From Tubulanus polymorphus (taxonomy: Eukaryota > Animalia > Nemertea), in NCBI RefSeq assembly GCF_964204645.1, contig NC_134031.1:1798001-1862000 (forward strand): a DNA stretch of 64,000 nt, in the 5' to 3' direction. Positions 29,301-64,000 of the stretch are shown here, one piece after another. A program made the translations under genes and the position numbers. The notes beneath the pieces were generated by a model. It saw only the letters and a program-made list of their open reading frames with translations. It had not been told where the DNA came from and did not search any database. The number at the start of each line of letters is the position of its first letter. Position 1 is the first letter of the stretch.

Positions 29301-32300
29301 ATGCCGAGTTGGACGTACGGGTACCGGGGCGGTATTCTCCTCACCCCGCGCCGACCGAGTCAACAGGATCGACGAGTCTTCAGTTTCTAACGGTTTGTGA
29401 TGATGGTTTAATGATTGGTTAGACTGGACCGGTGGTAGAACATCTAAACTATTCATCAGTGTTAGAAATAATGATGTAAATATTATAGCTGTTAATTAGT
29501 GCAGTGCATGTTAGCCTGATTGTAACTCTAACTATTTATACGAAGGGCCAGTTGTACCGATAACGCTAGATTTAAGACCAGTCTTAGCCCACTTAGGTCT
29601 CCAGCCCATCTAACAACCAGCCCCCCGTGTAACTGAGATTTAACGCTGTAAAATTTCAGTTTGGTATAAGCAAGTTTCTAGACCCAGTGCAACCTCAAAA
29701 CCTCATCATTATTGATGTTATGTATATGATAATTAGTAGTGTATAGTGAAGTAAAACGTACTTTCTGATTGCAGGTAACGGACGGTCATCGTAATCAGTA
29801 AGAACTGGTGTTAATCTCGCAGGTGTATGAGATCGGTAATCTGTGTAACAAATACAAACAAACCAATTCAACATCTCTATTCAAACAACACACAGAGCAC
29901 ATTGGATAAATGACTCTCCGTCTGCCTCTACTCTCCATCGTCCAATTAAATATCATCACAGAACACAAACTGAACACATTGATAAACAACTCCCTATATT
30001 ATTACCTTGTCTCTAAGTGTCCCAACCCTCTTCAGCCTCTCTTCCTGTCTCTGCTCCTACTCCCTGTCTCTGTCTCAGCACCCTCCCACCTCTCTCCCTT
30101 TTGTCTCTGCTCCCTCCCATCTCTCCCTGTCTCTTCTACTCCTTATCCACTCTCTCGGTCACTTACTCACTCTCTCCCTCTCTCTTCCTATCTCTGCTGC
30201 TACTCCCTGTCTCTGTGTCTGTCTCAGCACCCTCCCACCTCTCTTCCTATCTCTGCTGCTACTCCCTGTCTCTGTGTCTGTCTCAGCACCCTCCCACCTC
30301 TCTTCCTATCTCTGCTGCTACTCCCTGTCTCTGTCTCAGCACCCTCCCACCTCTCTCCCTTTTGTCTCTGCTCCCTCCCATCTCTCCCTGTCTCTACTAC
30401 TCCTTATCCACTCTCTCGGTCACTTACTCACTCTCTCCCTCTCTCTTCCTCTCTCTGCTGCTACTCCCTGTCTCTGTGTCTGTCTCAGTACCCTCCCATC
30501 TCTCCCTGTCTCTACTACTCCTTATCCACTCTCTCGGTCACTTACTCACTCTCCCTCTCTCTTCCTATCTCTGCTGCTACTCCCTGTCTCTGTGTCTGTC
30601 TCAGTACCCTCCCACCTCTCTCCCTGTTTGTCTCTGCTCCCTCCCATCTCTCCCTGTCTCTTCTCCTACTCCATATCCCCTCTCCCGCTCACTTTCTCTC
30701 TCCCTTCCTCTTTCTCACCTATATCACTAACTACCGGATGTCTGGAGATGGTGAATTCTAATAGATCGTGTATTTCTAACTCTTTATAAACTTGTAATCG
30801 ATATTCATCCATTTGAACTTTCTTCAATTTTGCTTTGTCATAATCTTCATTTTCGACTGCCTGACGCTTCTCAACTTCGAAACGACCCAACTTTTCACCG
30901 ACCTACAAAAAACAATGCCAAATTTCAAACCTTATTCTCGAAAAACTCATTTTTCAGTAACAAAACTAAAGATTCACTATGCACTATTCACTGACCTTTT
31001 GAAGTTCTTGGATGGCGACTTTTAGTTTCTTCGCCAAATCAAATCTCTCTTCTGTTAAGATTTAAATGAAAGATTTGATTGAAAATAAACTAAATTTTGA
31101 TATTGAGTGACACACAATGTCTAGCAAGGAATAGGAACATTTTTTGCGCACAACAATCTGAGGGAGGTGCAATTTACTTTTCAAGATATTTGAATTTTAA
31201 CTTACCTAAAACTGCCTCTTGTTTTTTCACCTCTAATCGACGTATGATCTGAGCGACCTCCGGATCTTGGTACATATCGAACGCTAGATCGTCGAGTGGC
31301 GAAATATAATCGGGACGGCTGAAAATACCGGCTAGAACCGGATCAGTCTGTAGCATATCGTGCGGCTCAGTCGGTAAATATACCTACAAATAAATATCAG
31401 AGATCGGGGATTCCACTTATGGCAAGTGAGGATCTACCAGGTGGCACTAGTGTGCATAGGACAATGAGCCGGATTTCTTCTCGGATTCAATTAGAATCTT
31501 AAATTCTAATGAATGACAAGTAAAGAAAAACTGTGCCATGACCAATCTGAGTTCATCTAGAGGTTGTCTGTCTACAGGCTGGGAGAGGCTCAAAATCTTG
31601 ATGAAAGTTGATTGTAAATTCACTAAATATTGATTGAATTGTCTTATTATTGATATGAACGCCATCTAGTGGGATAGCTGGAGCAGCACTGGGTTTTTAT
31701 TGATCATGAATATTTAGGAAGCTTCCTTTTCTTTAACAAGACTGCGTTTAAATAGACTCACAGAATCAGGATCTGATTTCACTTCATCTCCGATAACATT
31801 GATAGCCACGATACTGATCTAAAACCGACAAAACAGAACGAATAACAATTGATGAAATACTACAAGTCAATATTGTAATGATGACATAGAAATCCCACAC
31901 TGAGAGTCAAAACAGTCCTTGACTACACAGTTTATTCAACGTTTTTACTGTATCTTGATAGTCATCTTCAGGAATACTGTATTCCTTTTCGACTATATCC
32001 TAATAGTCTTCTTCAGGAATACTGTATTCCTTTTCGACTATATCCTAATAGTCTTCTTCAGGAATACTGTATTCCTTTTCGACTATATCCTAATAGTCTT
32101 CTTCAGGAATACTGTATTCCTTTTCGACTATATCCTAATAGTCTTCTTCAGGAATACTGTATTCCTTTTCGACTATATCCTAATAGTCATCTTCAGGAAT
32201 ACTGTATTCCTTGAGCTGAGTTGTTCAACATTTCAACTATATTCTTATAGTCATCTGAATATCAGCTCTGTATACTGAATACCGGTAATTACGCTGTTTT

Positions 32301-37100: not shown

Positions 37101-40100
37101 ACGAATTTTCAGATCTGTCGATTACGAAGCGTAAAGTTTCCGACGCGCGAATCGTTGATTTAGGACGGAATAAAAATAGTTTGGACTCCGCGTCGGTTCC
37201 GAACAAGAAAAACACTAAAACGGATCAAGATTCGACAACAAAACATATCGATTTACCCGACGCGCAGGTTCCCGATATTCGAATAGACTCTACGACGACA
37301 ACGACTGATGACGATTCGTTAAAATCAACAACGCAAAATGCCGGTGAAGATTTCATAACGCCCCCGAACACTCCGCACGAGGTATCCGTACTTCTGAATC
37401 GGAGTTTAGAAGAATTGAACGTAGCAGGCATCGCCGCCTCCCGGGAGCCACAACGACTAGCATCGTTCGAATCTAGTCCGACGTCGACGCCTCCGAACAC
37501 TCCTTACGGCACGGTTTACCTGACGAAAGAGGTTTTATTGCGAAACGTGGCCGAGGATATCGCGAATTCTAGAGTATTGAGCGATCGGAATTCGAGTTTA
37601 AAAACTTCGCAACAACGAAATAATTTCAAAGCTGACGATTTAAATGATAATACAATCGTGAAATCTGCGAACGATCAGAATATCGGTTTAAAAGATTCTG
37701 AGCAGCAACAACGAGAAATCGATCCTGAAGTTAATGATGACACAATTGTGAAATCTGAGGAGGATCAGAATGAATCGAGTTATCATAATACGGGTTTAAA
37801 AGATTTGAAGCCAGAACGACAAATTGATCTCGAAGCAGAAGATTTCAATGATAACACTAGTCCGGCGACAGACGTGGAAATATCGCAACTTCGTAGTTCA
37901 CCGCTGATTCCGACAGTCGAATCGTTGCTATCGAGCGGATCGGACTATCAGACGGCGACCTCTAATTCTAGTCAACCGTTAACGCCGACGAATACTCCGT
38001 TCGATCCGTCGCCGCTGAGAGGTTTAAGTACGACCGATGAATTTGAATCTTTGACGCGAAAACTCGAAAAAGATTTGAATGAACGGGATGCGCAATCAGC
38101 GATTGAGGGTAAACTTTTAAATTCAGAATTTCTTCTCTTGTTCAGTTTCGTCGAAAAGTTCGTTCTTTTTAGAAACTTTTCTGCTTTTTCGATTCGGAAT
38201 TTCTCTGCATTAAGAATATTTCATTCTCTTGCCCACCAGACCCCTTGTCTATGACCTTGCCTTGAAGAAGTCCTTGTGCATTTCGTGCGTTTGAATATTT
38301 CAATTTTTGAATATTTCAGTGGATTTGAATTCTGCAGCGACTGAAGTTGAAAATACAAATTCTTCATCGCCTGAGGAATTGGAAGTAGCGCAGGATGCTT
38401 GCCTCGATTACGCCTCCGGTAGCCCAACAGAGGGTGCCACTGCTGACAAACAGTCAGCATTTCCGACACGAAATCGTCGCCGTTCTGACCCGGTACCACC
38501 GCAGGTATCGCCGGCCATCGCCTGGGCAACGAAAGACGAAGGTTACATTTTACGAGCCGTCGAGAAATTACGTGACTCGGCGAACTCGCTGTCTCAGAAT
38601 ATCTTCGGCGGAGATAGTGAGACGAACCGGGACGAGGATGCTGCGCGTGACGACGCATCCGGGAGTTTTAAAGGCAATAAATTAGGATTGGACGATATGA
38701 TGGGTTGGTCATCAGCGCCGCTGGACACCGGTTCTTCATCCGCGCAGAGTTTACAAACTGAGAATGAACCGATTGATTCAAATAGTCTCGAGCAAACTTT
38801 ATCATTATCCAATAGTCAAGATCACCCCAACACGGGTAAGTTCTGAAGTTGTTCACCAGGGGGCATTGATGTGAAGGGACCCTGTCAAGCATACAAGGTG
38901 TCCCTGGACCCCAAGTTTCCTAGTGCGTTATTGCGCTAACACCTTCTCTTAATGTGTGTATAATGAATTAATGACCCCTAATTTCTCGTTAAAGATGAAA
39001 GTTATAATACACTGTTGAAAGATTACGCGACGCCATCAATTACGATACCAGCTCCAACAATTAGCAGCGTTATCGAAAACCTGACGGCAAACTCGCCAAC
39101 CGGGTCTGCAAAATCAATTCCCAAAAATAAAGTAAGATCTTCTGATTTCGTTTTGAGAATGTTGTATAATCCGATCCTCGAATGACAGAGATTCGAACCT
39201 GACGGCATCGAGAGACCATGTTACCCGCTCATTCGGGCTAATCAGACAGAGATTCGAACCTGATGCCATCGGGTTTGAATTCCTGCCAGGTTGGATGTAT
39301 AATCCAGGATCCAGTTTCACAGTTGTGGGTTGAAATCTGACTCGTTGAAAATGAACTGATTCTAACTCATTGAGTTAATATTTAACTCAGATATATAAGT
39401 AGCTATTTTAGCAGTCTTATGGGTAGACCCATGCGCCACTGGACCCAAAGACCCAAAATTAGATGGAATAATTGATATAATATGATATTACATATGATAT
39501 TAAACTTTGTTATGTTCCTGATGGATGGAATCTGGTAGGCCTACTACTAGAGTTAGTGCTAGTTCTCCACCTACAGATGGTTAAATTATTCAAGTCATTT
39601 TCAAATATTTTTCAAATTTTAACTAGAGAACTGTGGCACTAGAATAATCAAAATGTGTTGAATTACTTAATCCAGATTACTGAGTGCAAATGAGATGACA
39701 TTATAAACATGTAACATTTTGTATTTTAAGTATGTACACATATAGATTTTATCCAACACTCCTTATGCTGATCACAAAAACTTGGGAATTTTGAAGTTAT
39801 GTAACAGTTGGAACAATGCACCCATGTGTACATACTTTCTGGGCAGCATCTAATCAAAAGATCAGATAACCAAAACCGTATAGACCCGAGAGATCACAAA
39901 TTCAGATACGATTGAATGATTTTATTGTAGCCGAATGCACAAATCAATGAAAATCCGGCCGATTTTGAGGTGATCCCATTTTCGGCCTCAATCACATCTC
40001 ACAATGCTGAACCAGTAAGTTTAAACCAGTAAATTTGATAATCGCCCAGCTGAATATTCTGTTTTAATTTGCTATTGATCTGCGGTAAAATACCGGTAGT

Positions 40101-48700: not shown

Positions 48701-51700
48701 ATTCATTTCCACTAAATATTACAATATATCATTATACATTATAAAAATGAAGTTGAATTAAATATTTCAAAATTAAGCAAAAAAAAAAAATTGAAAATAA
48801 TTTTTGTATGAATAAATATATCCTGTAATATCCTGGGAAAAATATTTCCGAATTTCATAAATTCCCATCGCCGAATTTCATAAATTCCCATCGCGAGTGA
48901 ATTTGTTCATGTTAAAGAGATATTCATAAGATGTTCAATAGTTTCTAAGTAATTCTGTTCAGTATTTTTTGCGCGGCGAAGTGTTTCCCCAGAGGACCGT
49001 TTTAAAATCCTAGTCAATAATTTATAAGATGTACACTTTTCTTTGAAGAACTCTCTTTTTCTCTTTTCCTATATTCCCAAAACACTCTTCGTAGTCATAA
49101 ATGATTAAAGCAATAATTGATACATCGTTTGGACTCAAATCTCATAGGGAAAAAGTGCGCTCTCCTCGCTGTTTCATTGTAAGGTTTTCTCGTACAGACT
49201 ATGGTCTAACAACTCACTATCGCGAACAATAACGTGGCCACTTGTCGTACACGTCAAACTGGTTTGTACCAGAACAATCCAAAACCGACCTATTTGGTCA
49301 TTCTAAAGATTGCGCATCAGTGGTCTGTGGAAAGTTAGTTTGCCGTTTCGACCTGAGGTTAATCTCACAGACTACAGACACATAACGTGATATAAACATG
49401 TTTCAGAAATGACACGACCACAGTTTTGCGTTCGCCTTTTTTTTAAGCTAAAATACTATGTAAGCGTGATAACGAACAGCTGATACGATCACCAATGTCT
49501 GGCAAAAAAGGCAAAAACCTCTTAGAGGACATTTCCGAAATTTCCACATCGACCAAATCCGATTTAACCAACGTTAGAGTTGTTGTTAGAGCTGATGGGT
49601 GGAGATCGGGGGAATTACTTGTTGCGCGTCGAAGAAGTCGGTCGGGATTACGGCCCCTGGGGGTTCTCTCGTCTGTGAGCGACATTAATCTTATCATAAA
49701 TTGACTTTGTCTCATATAAAATTTAAAACCCGAATTTTGCCTCTCGATTTTTCACGTTAGTTCTATAATAAACAAGTGTAATCAGCCGTGATAATTATTC
49801 TTACTCGTTGCACGCGATCAGTCCAGGTATCCACCTATCTCTCGCAGGCGTTCGTGTTTTCTCTAACATCTGATCCTAATTCACTTTCCGCACGATATTC
49901 AACGCCTACCTGAATATAATTTTGTCCAGGGTCGACTTGTCGTGACGATCTCGAGAACGGCGCCTCCACCGTTAGATTATAGTGTTCTGTCACACGAATA
50001 AGAAACATTAAAAATAAAAATAAAAGTCGAATAAAAAAAAAACATTATCAAAAACACTGAACATCGTAAATATCTATAATGACGACGATGAGAGCCCCTT
50101 GAGAAGATGCTTTCACCGCCATTCAACAAATCAATTCCTATTTTTTCAATTTCAATCTTTTATTTGGAATCTGTGTAGAGTGTGGGCACTTGGGAAATTG
50201 TAATCTTTGGAATGTGGGGTTTTCATAATATCAAATCCGACACTCAAGAAGAAACAGTGAAACCTCGCCGGACGCCTTTGTTTTCTTTCTAAGAGTTGGA
50301 TTTTACAACACGGACTCTGAGTGTTTCATCTATGACCCCACAATAGACTTTCATATGATCGAATTTATGATCGAAATAAAACCACGACGTTTCGACTGTT
50401 GTCCAACAGCCATCATCGGGTGCAATCACTAGAAACATTTTCTCTTTTGGTTATTATATTTGGAGAAGACGTTATTTACATACAAATGTTGAAGATTTTT
50501 TAGAACAATCTGGGTTCGATCGTTATTCTCTAATTGGTGGCTTTTGATAATATCATATTGAATGTGTATCAAAGGATTTGTGTACCATGTTTTTTTTTTC
50601 AAATGTTATGAAAACATTCGCTTAAAGTTTCGGCCACTTTAATAATACATGTACTTTTTAATTTTTTTCCTTGCAAATGCATTACGCTCCAATTGTCATA
50701 TGAAAATGACCTGATTTCATCGGAAGTAAAGTAAATTAGAGATAAGTAATATGATATTCTCATCAACACCGCGAGTTCAAAACCAGACGCGCGTAGGAAC
50801 TTCACAGAAAATGGCATTAATCACGAACAAAATCCTTGAAACGAAAATCCCCCGTTGTTTATCGAAGCAAACGAAATAACTGTCGCCCTGATTCGAATTT
50901 TGCCTCTTTTCGTTCGAACGAACGGACATTTTCTATTCAAAGGGCGACCGCGTCTGCCGATCCGGGATCTCGACCGACGATTCTTTTAAACTTCCCTCAT
51001 CAGCAGTCCATACACATGTCTAATTTACACAGACTATTATTATCTGAATAAACATAAACGACGGTTGCAGATCCCTGGAGTTCTGCGCTGCATCTATTAT
51101 AACTAGTTTTGTCGGCGTCCTCTCTCACGCTTCACTCTGTTCGGTGACGTTTTACGGGGGCGGAGAAGAAAAATTTGAATATATATATACATCATCACAT
51201 ATCCTTTGATTTGCATATCGCAAAGTCATTTTTATGATAGCCCTCGACCAGAATTCACACAGCGATGAATCCAATTTCACAGGGTTTCATTTGATTCTGA
51301 AACCAGTTCTACAGTTATGTGGGTTAATTTGACTTTGGATCCAGACTCAGTTCCACGGTTGTGTGGATCCTATTTGACTCTGAACCCAGTTTCACAGTTG
51401 TGTCGATTTAATTCGACTCTGGATAGAGTTCCACGTGGGTTTAATTTCACTGTGGAACCTGAGCCATAGTTGCGTGTTTAAATCGTCACGAAGATTGGGT
51501 TCATATCTTCGTGGCACCTGGACAATTCTTGTATCACGAGTCAACTAATTCTCCTTAAAGGTGTGCTGAAAATTCATAAACAGCTGTTGAGACCATTGTT
51601 ACAAGTAAAATCACGTTTATGAAGTGTTCTTCATGTTGACAACTCCCAACAAGGTGACACTTTGTGGGGAGTGTTCGGATGTTCTTATATTACAGGCTCT

Positions 51701-53438
51701 GTGGGAGCTCATTTTGAGCATATCCATGTTTCTCAATCGCAAATACATACTTTTAAGATATAGACATGCGGATGGGACAACTTATTTTCTTAATTTCAGA
51801 AATTGAGTTCTGTTGTCATCCATTTCGGAGATTTGTTTCTTTATTGAAATTTGTCAATGATTATTATTCATTATTATTCAATTATTCAAATGATTACACC
51901 TAGATTGAAGTAGATTACAACTGGTGTAATCAATGTAGTGTATAGTTCTTCCATGTAGCCTATATACATGAATTGCTACCAAATGCGACCAACCACCTTT
52001 TTCGATTCTATGATGCAGCATTCTGACAGCTTTAACGTATGGAACCAAAATACCGTCGCGCATCGTCTAAAAGGCTAAAATAAATCCAAAAATGGATTTT
52101 TCATTAACACAGGACTTGACGATCCATTAATTCATCGAACTTTAGTTAATGTTAATATGTGTTTCTAAATAAAGTGATAAGCTCGCTCGCAGGTATGAGC
52201 TCAGGATTTTATCGGAGGGACTTTAATGAAACGTTCCATTAATTCATTGATAGAATGACATATGCGCGCATATTTGCAACCACATTTACCCCATACAAAG
52301 TATTCTAACCGTGGAAACAAGGCCACGAACCCCTTTCACGGCTGACCGGGTGCGTTACGTCGTCGAGGAGAAATCTATGATTGCCCGTTTCATTCGTATT
52401 TTGCTTTGGAATAAGACTATTAATATGAAATATGCTCTTTTATTGACAAAGAAAACTATCATAAGTAATTTAAACCCATCTATTTAATGGATTAACATCG
52501 AAATTTATTTATCAAGAATTAAAATCAGAAGACACGACGATTCAGACTCTCGCCCTGCTTAACTCCGCGTCTGAGTGCGGTAGTCGCGCATACCAAGTTC
52601 AAATCCCAGGTTTAAAGATGGTTGCGTTAAGGGAATGTTTTGATATATTCATTATTGTATATCTGCTGCTCAACAAAACTTTCGATCACGAACCATATCT
52701 ATATATGCATGGACCTCTCCGCTCGACAATAAAATACATCTTAATCATAACTATTTCACTCATATCTCGTATAATGTGACGCACTGATCGCAAATCGATA
52801 GATTGATATCTCTGTGAAATTCAATTATGTACACGATATTTCCTCGGTATCTGCTATTCTTAGAAACAACGAGGAGGAAGGCGGAAACGCAGACAGTCAA
52901 AATAGTGACAGTTTCGACCAAGATGAAACCAATTAGTCTTTCAGGCAAGCGACTGCGTGTTTTGTGGGGCCACAAATTCACCGAGTTCAACTGAAACTCT
53001 AAACATGTACCTAAACCATTTAACATTCTTAAGTGTATGAATCTCAAAGCTCTTAAAAATCTGTTCTATCCTTTCATTCGCGAAATTCTCAGCGTTTGTT
53101 GTTAATATAGCCAAAATCATAATAAAGGTCCAGAGAATATTTCTTTTTAAAGGGCTTATATATGTATTTCAGAATAAAAATATCATACCACAATTTGAAA
53201 GAGGTTTGTTTGCTTATTGGTTTTAATAGTGTATCGTATATAAACTTCCTCGAAATATTTTTCGAGAAATTGTTTAGAAGAAAGTTGAATGTTTAATCGT
53301 TGCCGCCCAGGTGTAATGATGCGTCACGAGGGTAGAATTTAGACCGCCGTGTTAGAAGTACCTATCTATACACTCTATCTACCAACTTCGTTCGTTTATT
53401 TTCAGGTGACGAAAACATCGAGAACTTTCATTCTAATC

Positions 53439-55939
53439 ATGCACAAAAACAAGCAAGAAGTGTTTATTATGGTGGTTGCCTTTTGTACACTATTGTTTCA
53501 TAGTTCCCTTGCAGACGATCAGGTAATATCCGCGTCCTCTCCCAGACGTACCCTTCATTTTATTCACGATCTAAATAATTCATCCGATTTATCCATCCCA
53601 TCAAAACATATGAAGCGTCACTGTCGAAGCACTTACTGTATTGAACTAGAAAATTATGAAATGTGCCATAAAAACATAGAATTAAGATTGATAATTCACA
53701 GGCTACATCCATTACTGAAATAACAGGGATCCAGTTCCACAGTTTTGCAGAACCTTTATGGTTATGCTTAAGACCATAAAAATGAAATAATATTTTACTC
53801 GAATTTCGAAGTGGGCATTAGACATATTGTTTGATGCGGTGAAAGAACTCCAGCACCCGAGGAGGGCCATTCAAATGTCCACCATTAAGGCCAGGCTTAG
53901 ACTTTTAAACGATATAATTCTTACTTTTATTTTGAACTGGGCCCAGCCAGGACATTTTTGACCGCGGTGACAACAAATCCCAACAAATCCCAGCACCCAG
54001 TTAAAGGGTCTGCCCTACTTGAAGACTAAGGCCTCGTCCTTGGGGTCCAGATGAACTCTATAACAACTGATCACATGAAATAGATATTCTATTTATGGAA
54101 CTGACTCGCGAGGAGAGAGAGAGAGGCAGAGATGGGCACTCAGGAAATGACTACGTGATGGAAACTTCTCGTATTCCACGTTTATAGGATTTAGTGATTT
54201 GTCGAGTGACGTCACCAGGATAAAATTCATCCGAATTAATCAAAGCTACAACAATCAACTGATATTATCAATATAAACCATCTGAAGACAACGTATTCGC
54301 GTCAGAACCAACGGACAACAAACTCTTACTCGTGGAAATGACGCAAGCTCCCCCGCCCCCATATTCACTCTAAAACTTGCTCCACAGTAGACTTCGAAAA
54401 TTCACGAGTTTAGATATCGTCATCAGAGGTCGATCCAGGGCGTATCCGCGCATGGGCTTCCGGACATCTCCTAGGATTCCCTTAAGAATTTCATCCCAAA
54501 ATATTCTGGACTGAATATTCGATAAAGAAAATGGATGTGATGGGATTTTTTAAAAGAACGGATTCAAAAAGGGTGTCCGCTGTCTGTTTTACCGTTCTAG
54601 CAGTTCTAGAAAATCATTGCGTTGAGCAACGAAATCGCGGTGAACCTTGAAAAAAACTCAAATTCTTAAAGTGTGTACATGCGCTGTTTCTTTCCGTGGA
54701 CCCTGGATCCACCTGGCGGGTAAATATACATAAAAACCACACGTCACTGAATAAGAACGGGTTTTCTGCTTTCTGTTTTTGATGAAACAAAGTACCGTGA
54801 GTTGAGATTTTGATTAAGCCTCGCTAAACAATCAATGGTTTAGGTTCAAATAATGCATTTTGATGAAGTCCGATACGAGCAGATGATGGAACGATTGATA
54901 TCACAGGGCCATCACGTGCTATGCGTAGTATGGCGTGGTAGAAATATGGATATGTGTTCGCTGGATGACTCCGTTCGGAAATCCTTTTCCTATTCAATAA
55001 AAACACATTTATCAAACAACGCATAATTTCGGCTTCATTATCCGCGATCAGCTCGATACAGAAGAGATGAGACCCGATCACTCCCCGGCCTCCACTCCAC
55101 GATATACAATCGCGCGCTGAGATCCGAGTATAAATCTTTTGACCCGCGGGCTAGGCTATTTAATCACCATCTTATACGTCGATTAGTGACAAGTCCGCGC
55201 CGGAGATGGCTACAATTTTAGCCGGCTTGTTTAGATTACTTGCGCGTCTAATCCACTTACGCAGAATGATAATCGAATCACTATAGTGTTCGCCGTTCTG
55301 ACAAACACTGAAGCCAATCTATACGTATAATGTGTACACATTGACAAACAAACAAACAAACTGCGTGACTCATCAATGTGACGACAATTTGACTTTGAAT
55401 TCAATAACAGTTTACTTAAAAACCCAGTTCCCCAGTCGTGAGGGTTTTATTTGACCCAAAAAAATCCAATTCCACGCTATGGGTTTGATTTGACTTCGGA
55501 TCCAATTCCACATGGTTTTAATCTGTCTATGATTACAGTTCAACACGTGGTAGGATGTGGGAGTTAAAATTCCATTGTACATTGCGTTGAGATGTTCATT
55601 AGTTTATTATCTCAATAATATCGCCGCCACGCTAGAGATATTTACCAACTCAATCGGTTCCTCTTTCAGTTCCTATGCTGTATGCGAGGTTGGAAAAGCA
55701 TCAAGGGAATAAAAGTTTGTGACGCACCTTGCTGTCCCGGATACGTTCAAAAAGTGTCGCACTCACCGCAGTTGTCACCACTAGTTTACTGCGATAAGAT
55801 GAAGGTATCCGCAGCCGTCGATACTAACAGGGTATTCATTTCTTTATTGGAAATCCTTCAAAAAAATTTTCTATCAAATTTTGTTTTCCAGAAAATCAAG
55901 AACACCAAGTGGAATGAAATCCTCAGAGGTAGAAATTAG
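53439..55939 (+). CDS. Secreted cysteine-rich cationic peptide precursor, 88 aa, 3 coding exons
   Basis: Exons 53439-53522 (acceptor before 53406), 55670-55804 and 55892-55939; both introns GT-AG, phase 0; AATAAA at 56091. Product MHKNKQEVFIMVVAFCTLLFHSSLA-DDQFLCCMRGWKSIKGIKVCDAPCCPGYVQKVSHSPQLSPLVYCDKMKKIKNTKWNEILRGRN. Confidence 0.8.
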
Positions 55940-56740
55940 CCTCTCTTCGATTACTGCACAAACGCCGGAGACTGAACTTTGTAATTTTCTTGCGTGAGAA
56001 AAACGGATTGAAATAACTCTAAATTGAACCAAAATTCAACTTTGGAATTTATACTAAATCCTATACATGTACGTCAAAGCAGTCTTGAGAAATAAAATTT
56101 CATTTACGATTGATAATTTTGTTTTTTTGCAAATTTGAATTTTCCCGCGCATTTTTTGTTACGAGGTTATCGGGTTTTGCCAAGCTGACGCGTTTCCATG
56201 AACGCAGCATTGACGATGTATGGATGTTTGTATGTTGTATGTGTCTAGTGCATCTTCTGTTTTTGTCCGATATTCACGCACCGACCCGATAATTAAGGTA
56301 AGGGTAAAATCAACATATTGTCGTAATGTTAGTTCAAGATGTGAAGACAACTCTAGTCCATCGGTAAACTTGGTATTCAAACCTTATTGACAATTGTTGG
56401 TCTGTGGGGTAGGCTATACACACGTATAGTCTAGTACCTAGCCGTCGTTCTTCAAACAACGGCTAGGGAAGATTGGTTGTAGGGAACTGGTAACAACGAC
56501 TGACACGTATTACGGCGGGCGGTAGTTAACTGTGTCTGATAAGCTGTGTGACTATTGTGATTGTAGAGGGCAACTTGGCGTGGATGTGCCCAGTAGTCTG
56601 CCTCGTGGCCCCATCGCGCTGATCGAAAGGCCGACCCATTAAGTAGTCGGGTTGATATCGTGTCGCGTAATATCTAAGAAGATATATTTTGTATTTATAT
56701 GCGACTTATTCACTGCTTAAAATTGTCAGTATTGTGTATC

Positions 56741-56750
56741 TATATATAAA
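56741..56750 (+). promoter_or_regulatory. TATA box candidate for the TPR-TIR gene
   Basis: TATATATAAA about 310 bp upstream of the ATG. A splice acceptor (tctttttttatag, AG at 57038-57039) lies 21 nt before the ATG, implying a short non-coding first exon. Confidence 0.5.
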
Positions 56751-57060
56751 CCCGAACATCTACTTGCGCCCCATTGTACAAAGCATCCATCTCGAAATTC
56801 ACCAGATCCTTAGAGTGACCGGTTCTCGGCGCTCCGTATATTGCGTGTACTAAGAGCTCCGTGAACCACCAATCCAGTCAGCGGTCGCGATGGCGTTAAG
56901 GTTCTCAGTGAATCATAATATAGTGAATCTGGCTGTACAATATGATAACCTGGTATATGCATTTTGATAAAAATACATTGATTTCAAGTTTATGGCTGAC
57001 AGATTAAGTTCACATATCTTCGTCATATCTTTTTTATAGATTTGATAGAACGGCACTAAT

Positions 57061-59670
57061 ATGGCAGCGTTAAAAAAACTACAGACGCCAATTGAGGAAA
57101 GATTAACCGCCGAAATTCAAAAGCTTCCGACGCATTATAAAGAATTTAAAGATAACGAATTCAGCTCTGATTATTTTAAATCGAGAATTGAGACCTTGGT
57201 CGACGAGCCCGAATTCGAAAATTTGGAAAACGGAACAAAAGATGACGAATTTAAACTTGTTTTTCGACGTTTTGAAAACCGCAAGAAGACGCTTCTAGCG
57301 CTGTTTTATTCCGTTATCGACGAGGAAGAGAAAGCGATGGAAATACTGGAAGAAATTATATCCAGTGACGCTAATGCTAGTATTGTAGCTATGGTAAACT
57401 TAGCGTGGTTGAAGATCGAAACTGGAGACCCGTCAGAACAAACAGAAGCCGAAGATTTGATAAACAAAGCTAAAGAAATATACACGAACAAAGATGCTAT
57501 TTTATTCAAACTGATTGCTGATGCCGAAATTTGCCATTTCCACGAGCGAGTTGGACCTGACCATTACCTAAAGGCTATTGAAGGTTTCAGAGATATCGTA
57601 AAAACGGCTGAAACGATATGTCCTGCTGCAGCACCGTACGATATCATTTGGCGATACGAACTGGCCGATTTGATCAACAGAACGTTTAACAAAAATGTAC
57701 TTTCAGGTCCAATGAAACAGTTGAAACAATCTAACGTTGGTCCGGAGGACTACTTACAAGAAGCGGCCGCATTTTTGAAGCCGGTTGTCGAATCCTCGAG
57801 TGAATTTGGGTTCATGAGAGCGCGAGGTTGGGTGATGTACGTTTACCTATTCAACCAATACCGCTACATCAAACCGATAGAGGATCGCACTATGCAACTG
57901 GAAGATATCACCCCAAACGGTGAGAATCTTTGCCAATGTTTAAAAATGGTGGTAGAATTTGGGATAAATGATTATTATTCAATGGAGAGACTCGGCAGGT
58001 TTTATCGCACTGTTGAAATTGATTTGGATGAGGCTGAAAAATATTTGAAGGAAGCAGCAGAACTGAGGCCCACTCCCTACTGTTACAACCAGATAGCTTT
58101 GGCCATTCGAGATAAACTGAATAAAGAGGAAGCCGTTCCTGAGTTGGAAGTAACTGACCGTAAAAATGGTGAGCCGGTCGACGAACAAAAATTATGCGAG
58201 AAAATGCGAGATTTGATGACAGACTCTCCAACTACGCGTGTCCCGGAAACACTAGACGTAACCCGTCAACCACAACCTGAGACATCTGGTGAAGTTTTAT
58301 CGCCGACAACTCCGGGTATAAAACCATCGCTGAAACGCACCAGTTCTACGGTAAAGCACAGTGTCCGTGCAAAATACTTTCAAATATTGCGCTATTCTTC
58401 GTGGCAGGTCGAACGCGTACGAGAAATAGTGGAAAACTTTCGAAAAGCTACCAAAATGACGCAAGGTACATCGCCGTATTTCCAGTGCGAATATTTCCGA
58501 TGGCAGATATCACTGGCTCTGACCGAGGGAACTACTTTAATGTCACAAAAGAAGTTATTTCGCGAATTGAAGAAGATGACAAATCAAAGCAAAGATATGA
58601 TGCCAAGAAATGCCGCTTACATTTACGAGACACTTGGGCAGTTTATGAAGTTTAAGGATAATAAGGAAGAAGCAAAGTTTTGGTATCGCGAAGCCATATC
58701 AACGCGAATGTCGTACAGAGAATCGCCCGGTCTATCTTTCGTCGATCTACGTCAGCTGATCAACAACGACACCGAACAGTCGAAAAAGAACAAAAACCTC
58801 GCTGATCTTTTCGAAATCGTCGGCGATTATCCTGGTGCTATTGGCTTCTTACAAGAAGAATTACTGAGAGACGATTTGGAACCTACAGACGAAACGGCGC
58901 TGTTGCTTTCGATGGCTAAGAATTACGCGAACATGGGTGCGTTTTCAGAAGCAGAATTGTTATTCCATATCTATATGCAACGTTTTCGAGACGAGAAAAC
59001 CATCCCAGCAGACGTCAGATCTTTGTATCTCGATATTAGATTTGGAGTAATGAAGCATATTGCGCAATTGTGTCGTCAGGATACTGAACCTACCGAGAAT
59101 GACACTGAAGAATTACCAGAGCCAAGCTATTTCTATCGACAAATACTGCAGGACGTACTCTTACGAGCGCCATCTGCCAGACGTCGTGCGTACGATTTTT
59201 ACATCGTCGTACCCGAAGAACTGGCAGACGAGAATTCCGAATTAGAAAAGCGTGCCTATGAGCTGTACGAGACGATAGTTTCGTTCGGCATTCCAAGCAA
59301 TCGATGTTGTTTCCCGCGAAAAACGTTGACGATACCCGGTTCACAACATGCGAAACAAGACGCGTATGTTTATATCATTCCGATGGCTTTCGTAAAAATA
59401 GAAGTCGCATGGCGTCTGGCCATCGATATGATTAAAACTCATATACAAGAGAACGATGACTACCGTTCGATTCTACTCGTTCGTTACGAAGACGAATGTC
59501 CGCTAGATGTCGCTCCTGTCGATCGTCCCGACGAGGTAGCCGACATATATACGTTTTTGAAATCGTGTCCAGTCGTTTTCGAATGGCACAAACACGACCA
59601 ACAGGAACTGAATGAAAACTTCATACGCGCCATAATCGATACAAAGTACTGGACCAAACCTGACAAATAA
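57061..59670 (+). CDS. IFIT/TTC22-like TPR protein with C-terminal TIR-like domain (869 aa, single coding exon)
   Basis: Uninterrupted ORF, AATAAA at 59731. TPR helices resemble IFIT motifs: '[28 protein letters not shown]', 'RLGRFYR....[26 protein letters not shown]'. The last ~160 aa begin 'AYDFYIV' and follow the TIR beta/alpha order. Confidence 0.8.
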   Translation: [869 protein letters not shown]

Positions 59671-61066
59671 TGACATATATATTTATTCGCATTGACTTTT
59701 TATGAAATTTCGAAATATTGTTGTATCGAAAATAAAATGCAATTTTTTCATTCTTTATGTATTTGATATAATAGTATATTACATAATGGATTCAAAAAGA
59801 ACGCGACCATTTAATGGTGTTATAATAGATTTATTCCAACAACGATGTATGCATATATATTAATAAATAAGATTATCATTTTCATCGTTTATTTAGTATA
59901 TGTCTAAATGGCTGAATTCTGGGGGTGTAAAATTAACTCGTTATTTGACGGGTAAAGTTACACAGAAGACCTGTGTGTCGACGAAAATCACAAAACATCG
60001 CAGAGCAAAGAGAAAAACATTCTATACACCGTTCCCACGGTCTCGAAAAAAAAAACGAAAGAATTTTGTTTCAGAAAGACTTTCAATTTTCGTTATATTT
60101 TTTCTTTGACAATAATATTCAATCAGAGATGGTTCCAATGCCTATAATAGTCAAGGGGATCCGGGCTTAGTATACAAATATATTGTACAGGTAATTGGTG
60201 ACATTTTACATTTTGAACGTGCATTTATTTGGTAAATTTCCCTGTGTCCATGTACCTGTTCCACCCATAAATAAGACTTCAGGTCTACGACACCATTTCA
60301 CCCATTACATGTACATTTCAAAGGCAAAGTCACATGTATTTATCTTAGATCTGAACTGGTTTAAATTCAACGAGACTTAAATTTTGCATAAAGTCTTATG
60401 TATCAAAGGTCGGGCGGATACCGAACAACAAATAACACCTCGACCCAACACACTAAAAGGGCTTGATGAGCGCTGCGCATGAAAATCATACATGCAATTA
60501 TTTTATCGTGTGCTGCGATGTATACTGTATTCTGACTGAGAGACTCGATTGAGAAAAGCGATTTGTGAGAATAAAGATGTGGTATTCACTAGGAAAACAA
60601 GCTTCTGTACGGGCTCTTACAGTAATGTAAACACTGCGTATCTGCGCCATATTTGGCAGATGGTTCTGCCCCTGACAAACAACAGTGATCGCTCTCTCCT
60701 CTCTCCACTCTCACTCACTTTTCTCTCTCGCTGAGTTTATTTTAAGATACAGCCTTGTATGTGAAATACTGCGGACGCTGGGTTCCTCCTGAGTTAGGTA
60801 AACTCAACGTGCGATGATTAATCAGAACATTGATTCTTGAGAATTTGACTCCGTAAGTTTCGGTGCGTACAGAACTTTCTGTTAATTACAGTCGCATCGG
60901 AATTCAAAAGCACAACCCGAAAACTACTCGGATACTTTTCAGTCGATTTTGGGTCGGTTTCTCTAACAATCGGGCGATTGTTTTAAAAAATTCTAACCGG
61001 CTCATTTTCGCATGGGAATACTATAGATGAAGCACGGTAGTTATCAACGACTTACTGCGACGAGGA

Positions 61067-64000
61067 ATGTACGGTTTGAGGAAGGGATTACGCGGGGGTA
61101 GGCGCGCCGGGGCCGGTCGAAAACGTTTGCCCGAGGAACTGAAAAAACAACGTCGCGCCATGCGAAAACAGGTTTGCATCTCGTGGCAGTTGTACGACGA
61201 ATGGGAGAAGAAAAAAGAAATCATCGGAATCAATAAAGATAAGGAGTTTTTACACTACATTCTGCGACAAGCCAGGTAAAAAACTGTTTTCATAATATGT
61301 TTTATTACACACGAAATTTTCTTAAACTTCTGCGGGGACAATTTCACGGTCATTGTGCGTCGTGGCCACCAGGGAAAATTGTCGTGGGAACTCTGTTGGT
61401 CCTTATCTATAAACGGTCATATGCTTATCTAAATTGAAGAAGAATAAATCGAAATTTTGTAGAGAAATGTTTATCAGAAAAATGGTGGCCCTTTTCATAG
61501 TAATTCTACAAATGCACACATGCCTTAGAATGTTCTTAGAATTTTTTTTTATACGAGGAAAATATGAATTGCTCATAACTATCTCAGTATTTAGTGCGCA
61601 TAACTCTCAGTAAGGTATATAAGTATAAGGTATGGTATACGCAGATAGCGAGCTGGCGGGAGGAAAAATTTTGTTCATAACTTTTCCAAAAATAGATCGG
61701 ATATTTCTTTGTCCTGTTGCAGCAGCAGCAGCAGCAGTGCGCGCACGTGCTGATGCGCGTTGCCAGATGTTCTCCTGGCAACAGTTACTGCGCACTGTTG
61801 CTCTGTTATCAATTATTGGCCTCGTTCCCGCCAGACGAGCACCTTTTAAGGAAGTGATCACTTAGAACGCTTGCTGCGCTGAGCGATTTGTCAATGAGAT
61901 CTTCCTACTTTTCGGACAGAAACTTGTAACAAGTTCCCACAAGACCTAAATTTCACTATATGTATATATTGAAAAAGGTTTTGCTTTTTTCGATGACTAC
62001 AATCGCGTCTATTTCATAAATTACGCTGGAATTCACAGCATCGTCCAAAAAAATAGTGGCAAAAATAAAGACAACTTCGAATGTATATAATATACCACAA
62101 TTATTGAAAATCTCCTAAAACTGGACTCGATCCTCCCTTCAATTCATGTATATACCTTTTTAATGAATAGATAGATAGTGACTAACTCATTATTCGACCT
62201 TTGGACGTTTGAATAATAATCATCAGACTCTGATCTGATGAAACTCGTGGCGCGTGGGATGTATATATTCAGTATCGCATAACACAGTTCCTTATGGAGC
62301 AGCGCCGTGTAAAACTAAGAATAAGTTTTACGGCTGCTGCTGCTGTTGCTGCTGCTGGAGCTGATGATGATGTTGATGATGATGATGATGCTACGGTTGT
62401 GTGTAATACCTTGCCCGGTATCTCTCCACATTCAGGCAATCAAACGGCGTATCGGGTTTCACCGAGCCGCCAACAGTTCTGCGCACTGCCAGAGCTCCAT
62501 AATCGACCATAACATAACATACCTGTAAAACTGAATCATAGAATAGTTAGCTTTCTTCTATCTCTCAACTCAAGCGCATAAAACTGATTCTGATTATTCT
62601 AAATTTAGATATTCAAAGAATTCGTACTCTAAGATCGCATCATCGTTCACTGTGGTGAAGACGTCTATATATCTTTATTTATCTTAGATCTGAGCCGGTT
62701 TCAATTCAACAAGGCTTAAATTGGCATACAGCCTAGTCTTAGCTTAAGTCTAGTACTCATAATATTAGAATCGGTGTCTTAGAATAAGAAGAAATGCCGT
62801 CTCTTATTCTTTAAGTCTTACAAACTACGTCGCTGTCAAATTTGATACTGAAACATTTTCTTTTCAATCAATTTTTCCAGGCCTCCAGATGAAGACCACA
62901 AAGAAAGCCCGTTCGCTAATTCGAAATCCTTGTCGGAATTTTTCAACGGACTACGTCACGACAACATGCTGTGTGACGTCATTCTGCGCGTGCAGAATCG
63001 CGAAGGTCGTCTGATGTTTTTCCACGCGCACAAACTAGTACTGCTCAATTCGAGTAAATATTTCAAATCGCTGACGAAAGACGAACTGCAGAAAAAATGC
63101 GAGTTTTTTCTCGAGGACGTCAGCCCGGACGGTATACGCCTGCTTCTCGATTACATGTACGGACTGCGCCTGGACCACAACGAGCACCTCGCGCACGTTG
63201 AAGACGTCATAAACGCGGCGGAAGTTCTACAAGTCGAGCAATATCTGAAACATTATAAGGCGTTGAAAAAACTATGGAAAGTTTCGAACGTCGATCGCGC
63301 GATTCTACCACGGGTCGGTAGTAATGATTTCAATTTCCGCGCATTGGATAACGGGCATCATCACGTGATCGGCGCTGCCACCGCCGGTCTGCCTCAAGTA
63401 AAAGTCGAACCGATTACCAAAGATGACGACGTAATTTGCATAGACGAATTAACACGTCAATCAAAACTCGAATCGAGTCAGCCGAACACGCCCATTAACG
63501 CGATACACTCGAATCACCCACCGAGGTTATCGTTGAATACGAACATGGCCGTGTTTCCCAGTCCGCAGCCGGTAATGGCGGGTGAGTTACCAGCCGGGAC
63601 TCTGGGAATGCCGCTGACACCTATCACCCCTAGTGTAGACGGTATCCCGCAACAGGTCAGACCGGTCAATATGCAACAAGTTATATTCATGGTTAACGGT
63701 CAGCCAGTACCGGCCATGATGTTACCGACGAGTCCGAATATAACCCCGACTACTCCGCAATCGGCCCCGGCAATAATGGGACTGACTCCACCGCTGTTCC
63801 CGATACAGGACATTAATCGACAATCAACATCCCCGAGAATGGAACCGAATTTACGACCGAAATTACAACCGAGTCCGCTGTCGAAAACCGAACCGAACTC
63901 CACCGGTCTGCTGGATTTGTCCAAGTCGCCGGAAGACTTCAATTCGCAAACCAGACCGAAACCCGATCACCGTTGCGTCAGATGCAACCAGTCTTTCGCG
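61067..64000 (+). CDS. BTB/POZ + C2H2 zinc-finger transcription factor (ZBTB-like), truncated by the window end
   Basis: Exon 61067-61275 (phase 2) joins an exon starting at 62881: 'FNGLRHDNMLCDVILRV....FFHAHKLVLLNSSKYFKS...LEDVSPDGIRLLLDYMYG' (BTB), a Pro-rich linker, then 'KPDHRCVRCNQSFA' (first finger) at the edge. Confidence 0.88.

Follow-up and report, generated by a model that had tools for sequence, protein, structure and literature searches.

An IFIT-like helical clamp joined to a diverged TIR-derived domain in a two-exon gene of the nemertean Tubulanus polymorphus

Introduction

IFITs are classic examples of interferon-stimulated genes. We found a single study devoted to their evolution. 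It records them in jawed vertebrates and nowhere else, candidates from acorn worm and lancelet having been rejected on a neighbour-joining tree, and describes vertebrate IFIT genes in which the 5'UTR and the ATG lie in exon 1 and the remainder in exon 2 (PMC3688568). The pocket of IFIT5 that receives the 5' end of RNA comprises residues E33, T37, Q41, K150, R186, Y250, R253, R260, H287 and Q288 (PMC9677429). Among invertebrates, 'TIR-TPR' has been counted as a domain-combination class in oyster (PMC4346834), and a further source cites the ecTIR-DC families, TIR-domain proteins of invertebrates that are conserved in evolution (PMC6321704). Within the literature covered, we found no statement on an IFIT-like TPR part for the 'TIR-TPR' class. 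A literature search for an invertebrate link between IFIT and TIR likewise returned nothing relevant.

Here we describe a gene from the nemertean Tubulanus polymorphus, a host for which we know of no interferon. The window, that is, the whole stretch of DNA that was analysed, spans 64,000 nucleotides of the forward strand (contig NC_134031.1, positions 1,798,001 to 1,862,000), and all coordinates below are those of the window.

Results

The coding sequence at 57061..59670 (+ strand) runs from an ATG start to a TAA stop, encodes 869 aa and is the sole ORF longer than 360 aa within the window. It stays open in three haplotypes, which differ by an in-frame 9-nt indel at 57625. A 2899-nt RNA contig from run X2 joins 56200-56297 to 57040-59840, placing the complete CDS inside exon 2. 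Exon 1 (56200..56297, +) is 5'UTR only; its 5' end is a minimum, the RNA contig beginning at 56200, and its donor reads AAG/GTAAG at 56297/56298. The intron that follows (56298..57039, +; 742 nt, GT..AG) is placed by the contig joint 56295>57038 (cut +2) together with the sequence. Exon 2 (57040..59840, +) consists of 21 nt of 5'UTR, the entire CDS and 170 nt or more of 3'UTR; its 3' end is again a minimum (at least 59840), and AATAAA occurs at 59731 and 59863. The 869-aa ORF is a real, expressed, two-exon gene, with transcription starting between about 56100 and 56200. Large ORFs at 29910-30789 were discarded as artefacts of a CT-rich minisatellite.

The first-pass annotation of this DNA had proposed an intronless ORF of 869 aa, a splice acceptor just before the ATG and an exon layout like that of IFIT genes. 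These proposals are borne out by the uninterrupted CDS from ATG to TAA in exon 2, by the spliced RNA contig of run X2 and by the presence of two exons with the full CDS in the second, the ATG lying 21 nt inside it. The TATA box that had been placed upstream is to be withdrawn: the stretch concerned, at about 56690-56750, is intronic and is not the promoter. The same intron holds a high-copy 31-mer at 56427-56461. Since the N-terminus lacks signal-peptide-like sequence, the protein is probably cytosolic.

Searches of Pfam and the PDB with the 869-aa protein directly returned just subthreshold generic TPRs, with no IFIT and no TIR. A word-indexed homologue search gave the self-match alone, the same kind of search with the alignment of its N-terminal module (N-module) gave unnamed generic TPR proteins alone, and a single-sequence AlphaFold (AF2) model of the full chain was too poor to use (pLDDT 39.8). 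An exhaustive HMMER search recovered 43 relatives (representatives), with N-module E-values down to 1.8e-16, from nemerteans, bivalves, a gastropod, hemichordates and amphioxus. They come from Tubulanus, Lineus, bivalves, Patella, Saccoglossus, Glandiceps and Branchiostoma, with Crassostrea, Pinctada and Mercenaria also among the mollusc members, and are annotated 'uncharacterized' throughout. On these profile matches we assign the 869-aa protein to a bilaterian family present in nemerteans, molluscs, hemichordates and amphioxus. The majority of its members end in a TLR/MyD88-type TIR, while TIR-less members recur, adjoining near-identical partners that bear the TIR. In the N-module tree members cluster by phylum, which fits vertical descent.

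Comparison with the family divides the protein as follows. The IFIT-like N-module (aa 10-361; 57088..58143, +) corresponds to IFIT5 residues 2-311 and is defined by the family HMM (292.7 bits) and by profile comparison with IFIT5 and IFIT1. A Ser/Thr/Pro-rich linker (aa 362-435; 58144..58365, +), predicted to be unstructured, lies where paralogues have an ORF break, and leads into a middle TPR/helical region (aa 436-700; 58366..59160, +) that is colinear with the family mid-region and carries subthreshold TPR_8 and TPR_7. The diverged TIR-like domain (aa 708-862; 59182..59646, +) is delimited by hhalign to the family TIR, an AF2 model and fold matches.

With the N-module family profile, the best natural proteins in the PDB were IFIT5 (4.4e-27) and IFIT1 (2.3e-25), designed consensus TPR proteins scoring above them. 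The HMMER alignment is colinear from residue 2, pairing profile positions 2-185 with IFIT5 2-187 and 244-336 with 218-311; part of the module matches generic TPR proteins equally well or better. The mid-region profile is colinear with IFIT5 314-479 (E 2.8e-7), and here generic TPR proteins outscore IFIT. A language-model search placed TTC22 and IFIT as the nearest clusters, both at 0.93, and a shape search matched an IFIT2 cluster over aa 6-599 (TM 0.68). The pairs of IFIT1-type motifs proposed at first pass are reproduced when the family profile is aligned by HMMER with the IFIT1 and IFIT5 chains. A preference for IFIT over generic TPRs, whose lack would have counted against the first-pass reading, is seen in the N-module, and the mid-region favours generic TPRs. 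By sequence, aa 10-361 are homologous to and colinear with the vertebrate IFIT clamp, which comprises subdomains I, II, pivot and III; for aa 436-700 this is less certain.

The residues of IFIT5 that contact RNA have counterparts in the family alignment. The K150 column is Arg in 28 of 35 members, R186 is Arg in 34/35, R260 is Arg in 29/35 and H287 is His in 30/35, and these four positions coincide with the most conserved residues of the family. The R253 column is a conserved Glu across the family and the E33 column is variable. In the alignment of the 869-aa protein itself, K150, R186 and R260 of IFIT5 correspond to R163, R207 and R316, and Y250, Q288 and T37 to Y306, Q344 and T45; changed positions are R253 (E309), H287 (N343), Q41 (E49) and E33 (S41). 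Because the most conserved residues of the family map to the RNA-contacting K150, R186, R260 and H287, the clamp would be expected to bind a ligand that is anionic. As for IFIT1 and IFIT5, this would most likely be non-self RNA, held by its 5' end.

At the C-terminus, the family profile matched TLR15/TLR2 (1.3e-9), oyster TIR-STING (6e-9, the second-best match) and MyD88 (1e-7) in the PDB, and also MAL by sequence. Pfam TIR_2 was found at E<=0.01 in 3 of the 40 family members scanned (best 1.6e-6), and paralogue L003 gave Pfam TIR at E 0.047. The profile matches identify the family C-terminus as a TIR of TLR/MyD88 type. For the 869-aa protein, Pfam TIR and TIR_2 gave no TIR row even at E 10, and the local family HMM reached only E 0.084 on its C-terminus. 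Aligned with the family TIR by hhalign, it gave E 0.0033 over 100 columns, with 152 columns in register when realignment was omitted. The score of 23.2 was reached by none of 300 shuffles (11.9±2.1), which argues that the alignment is not a composition artefact, and about 30 of the 40 family-conserved columns that it spans are kept.

Guided by aligned relatives that carry a TIR, AF2 gave a model of the TIR-like domain with pLDDT 72.4 and pTM 0.67. In VIA-align, a structural aligner, the top 11 matches to this guided model were all TIR (Z 8.8-10.7), oyster TIR-STING being the second best (Z 10.2), with other flavodoxin-like folds reaching Z 8.7. Top Foldseek matches were TIR as well (probability 0.96, E-values 0.01-0.1 only), as were 10 of 10 ESM Atlas rows (TM 0.53-0.63). 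An alignment-free language-model search with aa 700-869 gave no usable match, and the Atlas's own model of the C-terminal part showed no TIR resemblance. The box 1 Asp and hydrophobic strand (D712-V716), P759 and G760 of the BB loop, which joins strand B to helix B, the hydrophobic core, conserved prolines and hydrophobic residues of helix E are retained; the box-2 Asp and Asn are replaced by T755 and P752, and the conserved Ser of the family TIR is Q766. The TIR strand order proposed at first pass agrees with the family alignment and with the secondary structure of both models. Its assignment of the C-terminal 160 aa to TIR draws support from the profile alignment and the guided fold and none from the direct Pfam TIR/TIR_2 search. 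We conclude that these 160 aa are a strongly diverged descendant of the family TIR. With its TIR the most eroded, the 869-aa protein is the least informative member of the family.

Variation between haplotypes is concentrated in this domain, where nucleotide divergence is about 12-fold higher and pN/pS is 0.97-1.12. Within it, a hypervariable segment (aa 746-802; 59298..59465, +) shows 14 differences in 168 nt (pN/pS 0.97), such that alleles differ by about 8% in the domain core. The TIR-like domain of the 869-aa protein shows no purifying selection between alleles. Gene conversion was considered as the source of the hypervariable segment and rejected, as a second copy of the C-terminal domain was sought in the assembly and none was found.

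Discussion

The architecture of an IFIT-like clamp fused to a TIR-derived domain is supported. The reading that we hold to be probable, with moderate confidence, is that of an expressed protein with an IFIT-like clamp and a diverged TIR, in which sensing of RNA 5' ends would be followed by signalling through TIR-TIR contacts. Ligand binding to the clamp would then be relayed by TIR-TIR assembly with adaptor proteins. An output function is doubtful in the 869-aa protein, because the polar residues of box 2 are replaced and, with pN/pS near 1, the alleles diverge in the core of the domain.

These same observations would suit an IFIT-like effector whose tail is decaying or has been put to another use. 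Its clamp would bind and sequester RNA, and its former TIR would no longer signal, having at best a part in oligomerisation or regulation. The domain falls under every direct TIR threshold, nucleotide divergence between haplotypes is raised in it with pN/pS near 1, and members without TIR are repeatedly found beside their TIR-bearing near-identical partners. Yet three haplotypes keep the ORF open, the indels being in frame, and the hydrophobic core, the BB-loop PG and the conserved prolines persist; moreover, the TIR of the closest paralogue has diverged to a similar degree and can still be aligned, which suggests long-term retention. We regard this account as possible and clearly less probable than the sensor with TIR signalling. 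TPR domains mostly bind peptides. A TPR-TIR adaptor whose ligand is a protein or peptide and not RNA, its likeness to IFIT reflecting shared scaffold ancestry only, would explain why generic TPRs do as well as IFIT or better on the mid-region and on part of the N-module, why Glu is conserved at R253 with E33 variable, and why the oyster 'TIR-TPR' combination is listed without a link to RNA (PMC4346834). It sits poorly with an IFIT colinearity that begins at residue 2 and with four basic or His RNA-contact positions among the best conserved of the family, and we consider it unlikely.

The structural matches to the guided model include Cat1, SARM1, TIR-1 and plant TIRs (in the Z range of 8.8-10.7), and bacterial TPR-TIR proteins are among the shape matches, as would be expected of an executioner in which a clamp ligand oligomerises the TIR and NAD+ is hydrolysed in the manner of SARM1 and of bacterial and plant TIRs. 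NAD cleavage is less likely because the catalytic glutamate is not conserved: the acidic column of helix C, whose placement against the catalytic site carries an uncertainty of two residues, is Glu in just 8 of 30 members and Asp in 4 of 30, with Asp789 in the 869-aa protein. By sequence, moreover, the family profile matches TLR, MyD88, MAL and TIR-STING and not SARM1, and we judge an NAD-cleaving role very improbable. Still harder to credit, and already disfavoured, is a generic TPR protein with an unrelated alpha/beta C-terminus, the likenesses arising spuriously from repeat matching and from the guidance given to the model. Single-sequence searches that found neither IFIT nor TIR, the higher scores of designed consensus TPRs and the Atlas model of the tail are what it would predict; a long, colinear and N-terminally anchored IFIT alignment, highly significant family membership and the shuffle control, which rules out a composition artefact in the TIR alignment, all contradict it.

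Returning to the sensor with TIR signalling, that most family members bear a TIR suggests that the ancestral role may have been sensing coupled to signalling rather than passive sequestration of RNA. An IFIT-colinear family with RNA-contact residues in both protostomes and non-vertebrate deuterostomes would place the origin of the IFIT fold before the interferon system. Tentatively, and as something less probable than not, we suggest that the bilaterian ancestor had a one-chain cytosolic sensor made of an IFIT-type RNA 5'-end clamp and a TIR, of which vertebrate IFITs, and perhaps TTC22, would be TIR-less, interferon-driven descendants. If so, the TIR-less members in amphioxus and molluscs would replay the loss of the TIR.

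Among known systems, vertebrate IFIT1 and IFIT5 (PDB 5W5H, 3ZGQ/4HOR) share with the 869-aa protein an N-terminally colinear helical TPR clamp, basic or His residues conserved in the family at IFIT5 K150, R186, R260 and H287, and a two-exon gene whose second exon holds essentially all of the coding sequence (PMC3688568). The nemertean protein differs in being about 390 aa longer, in a linker, predicted to be unstructured, that follows the counterpart of IFIT5 residue 311, and in additional helical repeats and a TIR-derived domain at the C-terminus, whereas IFITs are TPR-only and have no signalling domain. Its ATG lies in exon 2 instead of exon 1, and a scan of the locus from 50154 to 63327 for the ISRE (GAAANNGAAA) gave zero matches. 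TTC22 (vertebrate tetratricopeptide repeat protein 22) is nearest by language-model features (0.93, 187 of 256 features shared) and lacks the TIR that our protein has in derived form. Bacterial TIR/TPR defence proteins (BcTir/Tpr, bioRxiv 10.1101/2023.05.26.542521; TPR-S + TIR_2 clusters) also combine a TPR sensor with a TIR output, but their TIRs consume NAD and their TPRs are not IFIT-like; the likeness seen is one of domain combination and shape. In oyster TIR-STING (PDB 6WT6/6WT7) a ligand-binding module is likewise joined to a TIR in one chain; there the sensor is STING, a receptor for cyclic dinucleotides, and the TIR stands at the N-terminus, whereas here an IFIT-like clamp precedes a C-terminal TIR. 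The invertebrate 'TIR-TPR' and ecTIR-DC proteins have the same domain combination as the family described here and occur in the same taxa.

An IFIT-type clamp identified through family profiles

In direct searches with the 869-aa protein, Pfam gave just subthreshold generic TPR matches and no TIR, a PDB sequence search gave no match, and a word-indexed search retrieved, out of 5.8 billion proteins, the protein itself alone. By protein-language-model search, the nearest clusters were TTC22 and IFIT (0.93; up to 187/256 shared features), and residues 6-599 of its Atlas structure superimposed on an IFIT2 cluster with a TM score of 0.68 normalised to IFIT2. HMMER, run exhaustively over 1.84 billion representatives, returned 43 proteins at E<=1e-3, seven of them at E<=1e-10. 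The named members are all 'uncharacterized' or 'hypothetical', except that UniRef labels one as a 'Tetratricopeptide repeat protein', and come from Nemertea (Tubulanus, Lineus), Bivalvia (Crassostrea, Tegillarca, Argopecten, Dreissena, Sinanodonta, Mercenaria, Pinctada, Potamilus), Gastropoda (Patella), Hemichordata (Saccoglossus, Glandiceps) and Cephalochordata (Branchiostoma). Of the 43, most measure 730-980 aa. When their domains are mapped with family HMMs, a common plan emerges: a ~340-aa N-module comes first, then a variable linker and a middle TPR region, and 27 of the 43 members end in a further domain of ~190 profile positions.

When a profile built from 35 N-modules (A4) was run against the full set of PDB sequences, the best natural matches were IFIT5 (4.4e-27) and IFIT1 (2.3e-25; 1.3e-16 for its N-terminal fragment), and the next natural family was OGT at 1.6e-12. 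Only designed consensus-TPR proteins ranked above IFIT, with scores built from many repeated short matches. Alignments to IFIT extend over long stretches and are colinear starting at the extreme N-terminus (profile 2-185 with IFIT5 2-187, and 244-336 with IFIT5 218-311). They reproduce the IFIT motif pairs that the first-pass annotation had listed. The middle-region profile (A5) aligns continuously with IFIT5 314-479 (E 2.8e-7), a region in which generic TPR proteins outscore IFIT. Homology of the clamp to IFIT is well supported.

RNA-contact residues of IFIT5 (PMC9677429) were mapped onto the family through the 35-member N-module profile. K150, R186 and R260 fall in columns that are Arg in 28, 34 and 29 of 35 members (R163, R207 and R316 in the 869-aa protein). 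H287 and Q288 correspond to His columns (30/35 and 23/35; N343 and Q344), Y250 to Phe/Tyr (24/35; Y306) and R253 to Glu (18/35; E309), while the N-terminal triad E33/T37/Q41 is only loosely kept (S41, T45 and E49). Taken as aligned residues, this pattern is only suggestive of a conserved RNA pocket.

In a maximum-likelihood tree of N-modules, nemertean (94/88), deuterostome (95/88) and mollusc (97/96) sequences form separate groups, which fits vertical descent with lineage-specific expansion. TIR-less members of IFIT size (480-596 aa) adjoin TIR-bearing partners in this tree: P0021/P0009 in Branchiostoma, P0027/P0033 in Patella, and P0013/P0019. The N-modules of the Branchiostoma and Patella pairs are nearly identical. 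Such members may reflect either recent loss of the TIR or truncated gene models.

The C-terminal domain is a TIR in the family and an eroded, TIR-derived domain in this copy

A profile of 28 family C-termini (A2) matched the TIR domains of TLR15/TLR2 (1.3e-9), oyster TIR-STING (6e-9) and MyD88 (1e-7), as well as MAL, TLR3 and the plant proteins Roq1 and RUN1. On these profile matches we assign the family domain as a TIR; Pfam TIR_2 detects it in 3 of 40 members scanned at E<=0.01.

For the 869-aa protein itself, evidence for a TIR is indirect but consistent. Residues 708-815 align in register with the family TIR (hhalign, E 0.0033); omitting realignment, hhalign spans 152 columns with a score of 23.2, compared with 11.9±2.1 (maximum 21.1) for 300 shuffles, and MAFFT yields the same register. 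About 30 of the 40 family-conserved TIR columns spanned carry the same or a similar residue. Among the features kept are the Asp and strand of box 1, the Gly that precedes strand B, the BB-loop Pro-Gly, the hydrophobic character of strands C and D, helix E and a pair of conserved prolines. Box 2 has lost its polar Asp and Asn to other residues, and a conserved Ser is likewise replaced. In helix C the acidic column varies across the family, and the alignment shows nothing that would mark a conserved NADase site.

An AlphaFold model of the tail on the MAFFT family alignment, which leaned on TIR-bearing relatives, reached pLDDT 72.4 and pTM 0.67. Among 48,161 chains compared by VIA-align, the best 11 were all TIR domains (Z 8.8-10.7), with other flavodoxin-like folds at Z 8.7 or below. 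TIRs were also the top Foldseek matches, with weak E-values (0.013-0.1), and made up all ten of the shape matches from the ESM Atlas. Searching aa 700-869 by alignment-free methods found nothing TIR-like, and a single-sequence model was poor, yet predicted the same beta-alpha order. The proposed joining of an IFIT clamp to a TIR stands, and the family represents it better than the eroded copy in the window.

Erosion is shared by the closest paralogue in the same genome (P0002, XP_074648265.1, on contig C4), whose TIR remains alignable (E 4.3e-4). This genome also has a second subfamily of IFIT-like/TIR genes, at G000:C67:7699-11478 (L003), C11:3940799-3944971 (L006) and C8:12192756-12196934 (L007). 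Each copy appears as two ORFs (~431 and ~400 aa) broken in the linker, and the C8 match contains one TAA. Their TIR has been preserved better, with E 0.047 for TIR_2 and 1e-7 to 1e-11 for the family HMM. Two short TIR-like fragments with internal stop codons, G000:C11:6229384-6229563 (L008) and C11:6252097-6252258 (L009), are probably pseudogene remnants of this subfamily.

Transcription, surroundings and allelic variation

The gene is encoded by the single long ORF of the window (57061-59670, + strand; ATG start, TAA stop); an ORF scan of the 64 kb found no other above 357 aa. Among the RNA contigs of public run X2, a spliced molecule of 2899 nt links 56200-56297 with 57040-59840, the intervening 742 nt being a GT..AG intron (+). 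This establishes a transcribed gene of two exons whose coding sequence lies wholly in exon 2. The splice acceptor predicted before the ATG is real, 21 nt upstream of it, and the TATA-like stretch taken for a promoter falls within the intron. The upstream neighbour gene likewise has a spliced X2 contig (55666-55802 and 55890-56083, +, 87-nt GT..AG intron) and an AATAAA at 56091; it ends only ~100 nt before exon 1.

Several other features were recorded. In DNA run X1, the depth of an intronic word of 31-35 nt at 56427-56461 rises to as much as 800, compared with 33 in its flanks, suggesting a high-copy repeat. A CT-rich minisatellite at 30102-30681 (units 59/118 bp) accounts both for the GC skew of -0.34 across 30001-32000 and for three overlapping ORFs at 29910-30789, which lack a Pfam match and were rejected as spurious. 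A 357-aa ORF with a TTG start at 37181-38254 is likewise without Pfam match.

Relative to the window, the expressed allele carries 20 CDS substitutions and an in-frame 9-nt deletion, and its ORF is open. Fifteen substitutions map to codons 701-869, the other five to codons 1-700 (Fisher p 1e-7), with 14 concentrated in 59298-59465 (14/168 nt, ~8%), synonymous and nonsynonymous alike. No paralogous donor for this segment was found in the assembly, and the locus has at least three haplotypes. Overall pN/pS is 1.08, and the hot segment taken by itself gives 0.97. Such variation speaks against the TIR-like domain being under strong purifying selection at present; it is compatible with relaxed constraint and with balanced, old haplotypes alike.

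Proposed function and relation to known systems

The ligand of the IFIT-type clamp encoded by this expressed gene would be anionic, the 5' end of an RNA being the most plausible candidate. Canonical family members would relay the signal via TIR-TIR assembly of the TLR/MyD88 type; in the window copy, with its TIR-derived tail, this relay may be weakened or lost.

IFITs have been reported from jawed vertebrates only, with three acorn-worm and three lancelet TPR candidates dismissed on a neighbour-joining tree (PMC3688568). 'TIR-TPR' has been counted as a domain combination of the oyster genome (PMC4346834), and invertebrate ecTIR-DC families are mentioned in PMC6321704. We found no literature link between the TPRs of TIR-TPR proteins and IFIT, the primary classification paper being outside this scope. 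The IFIT clamp and the TIR are both of known kinds, here combined in a protein of putative function.
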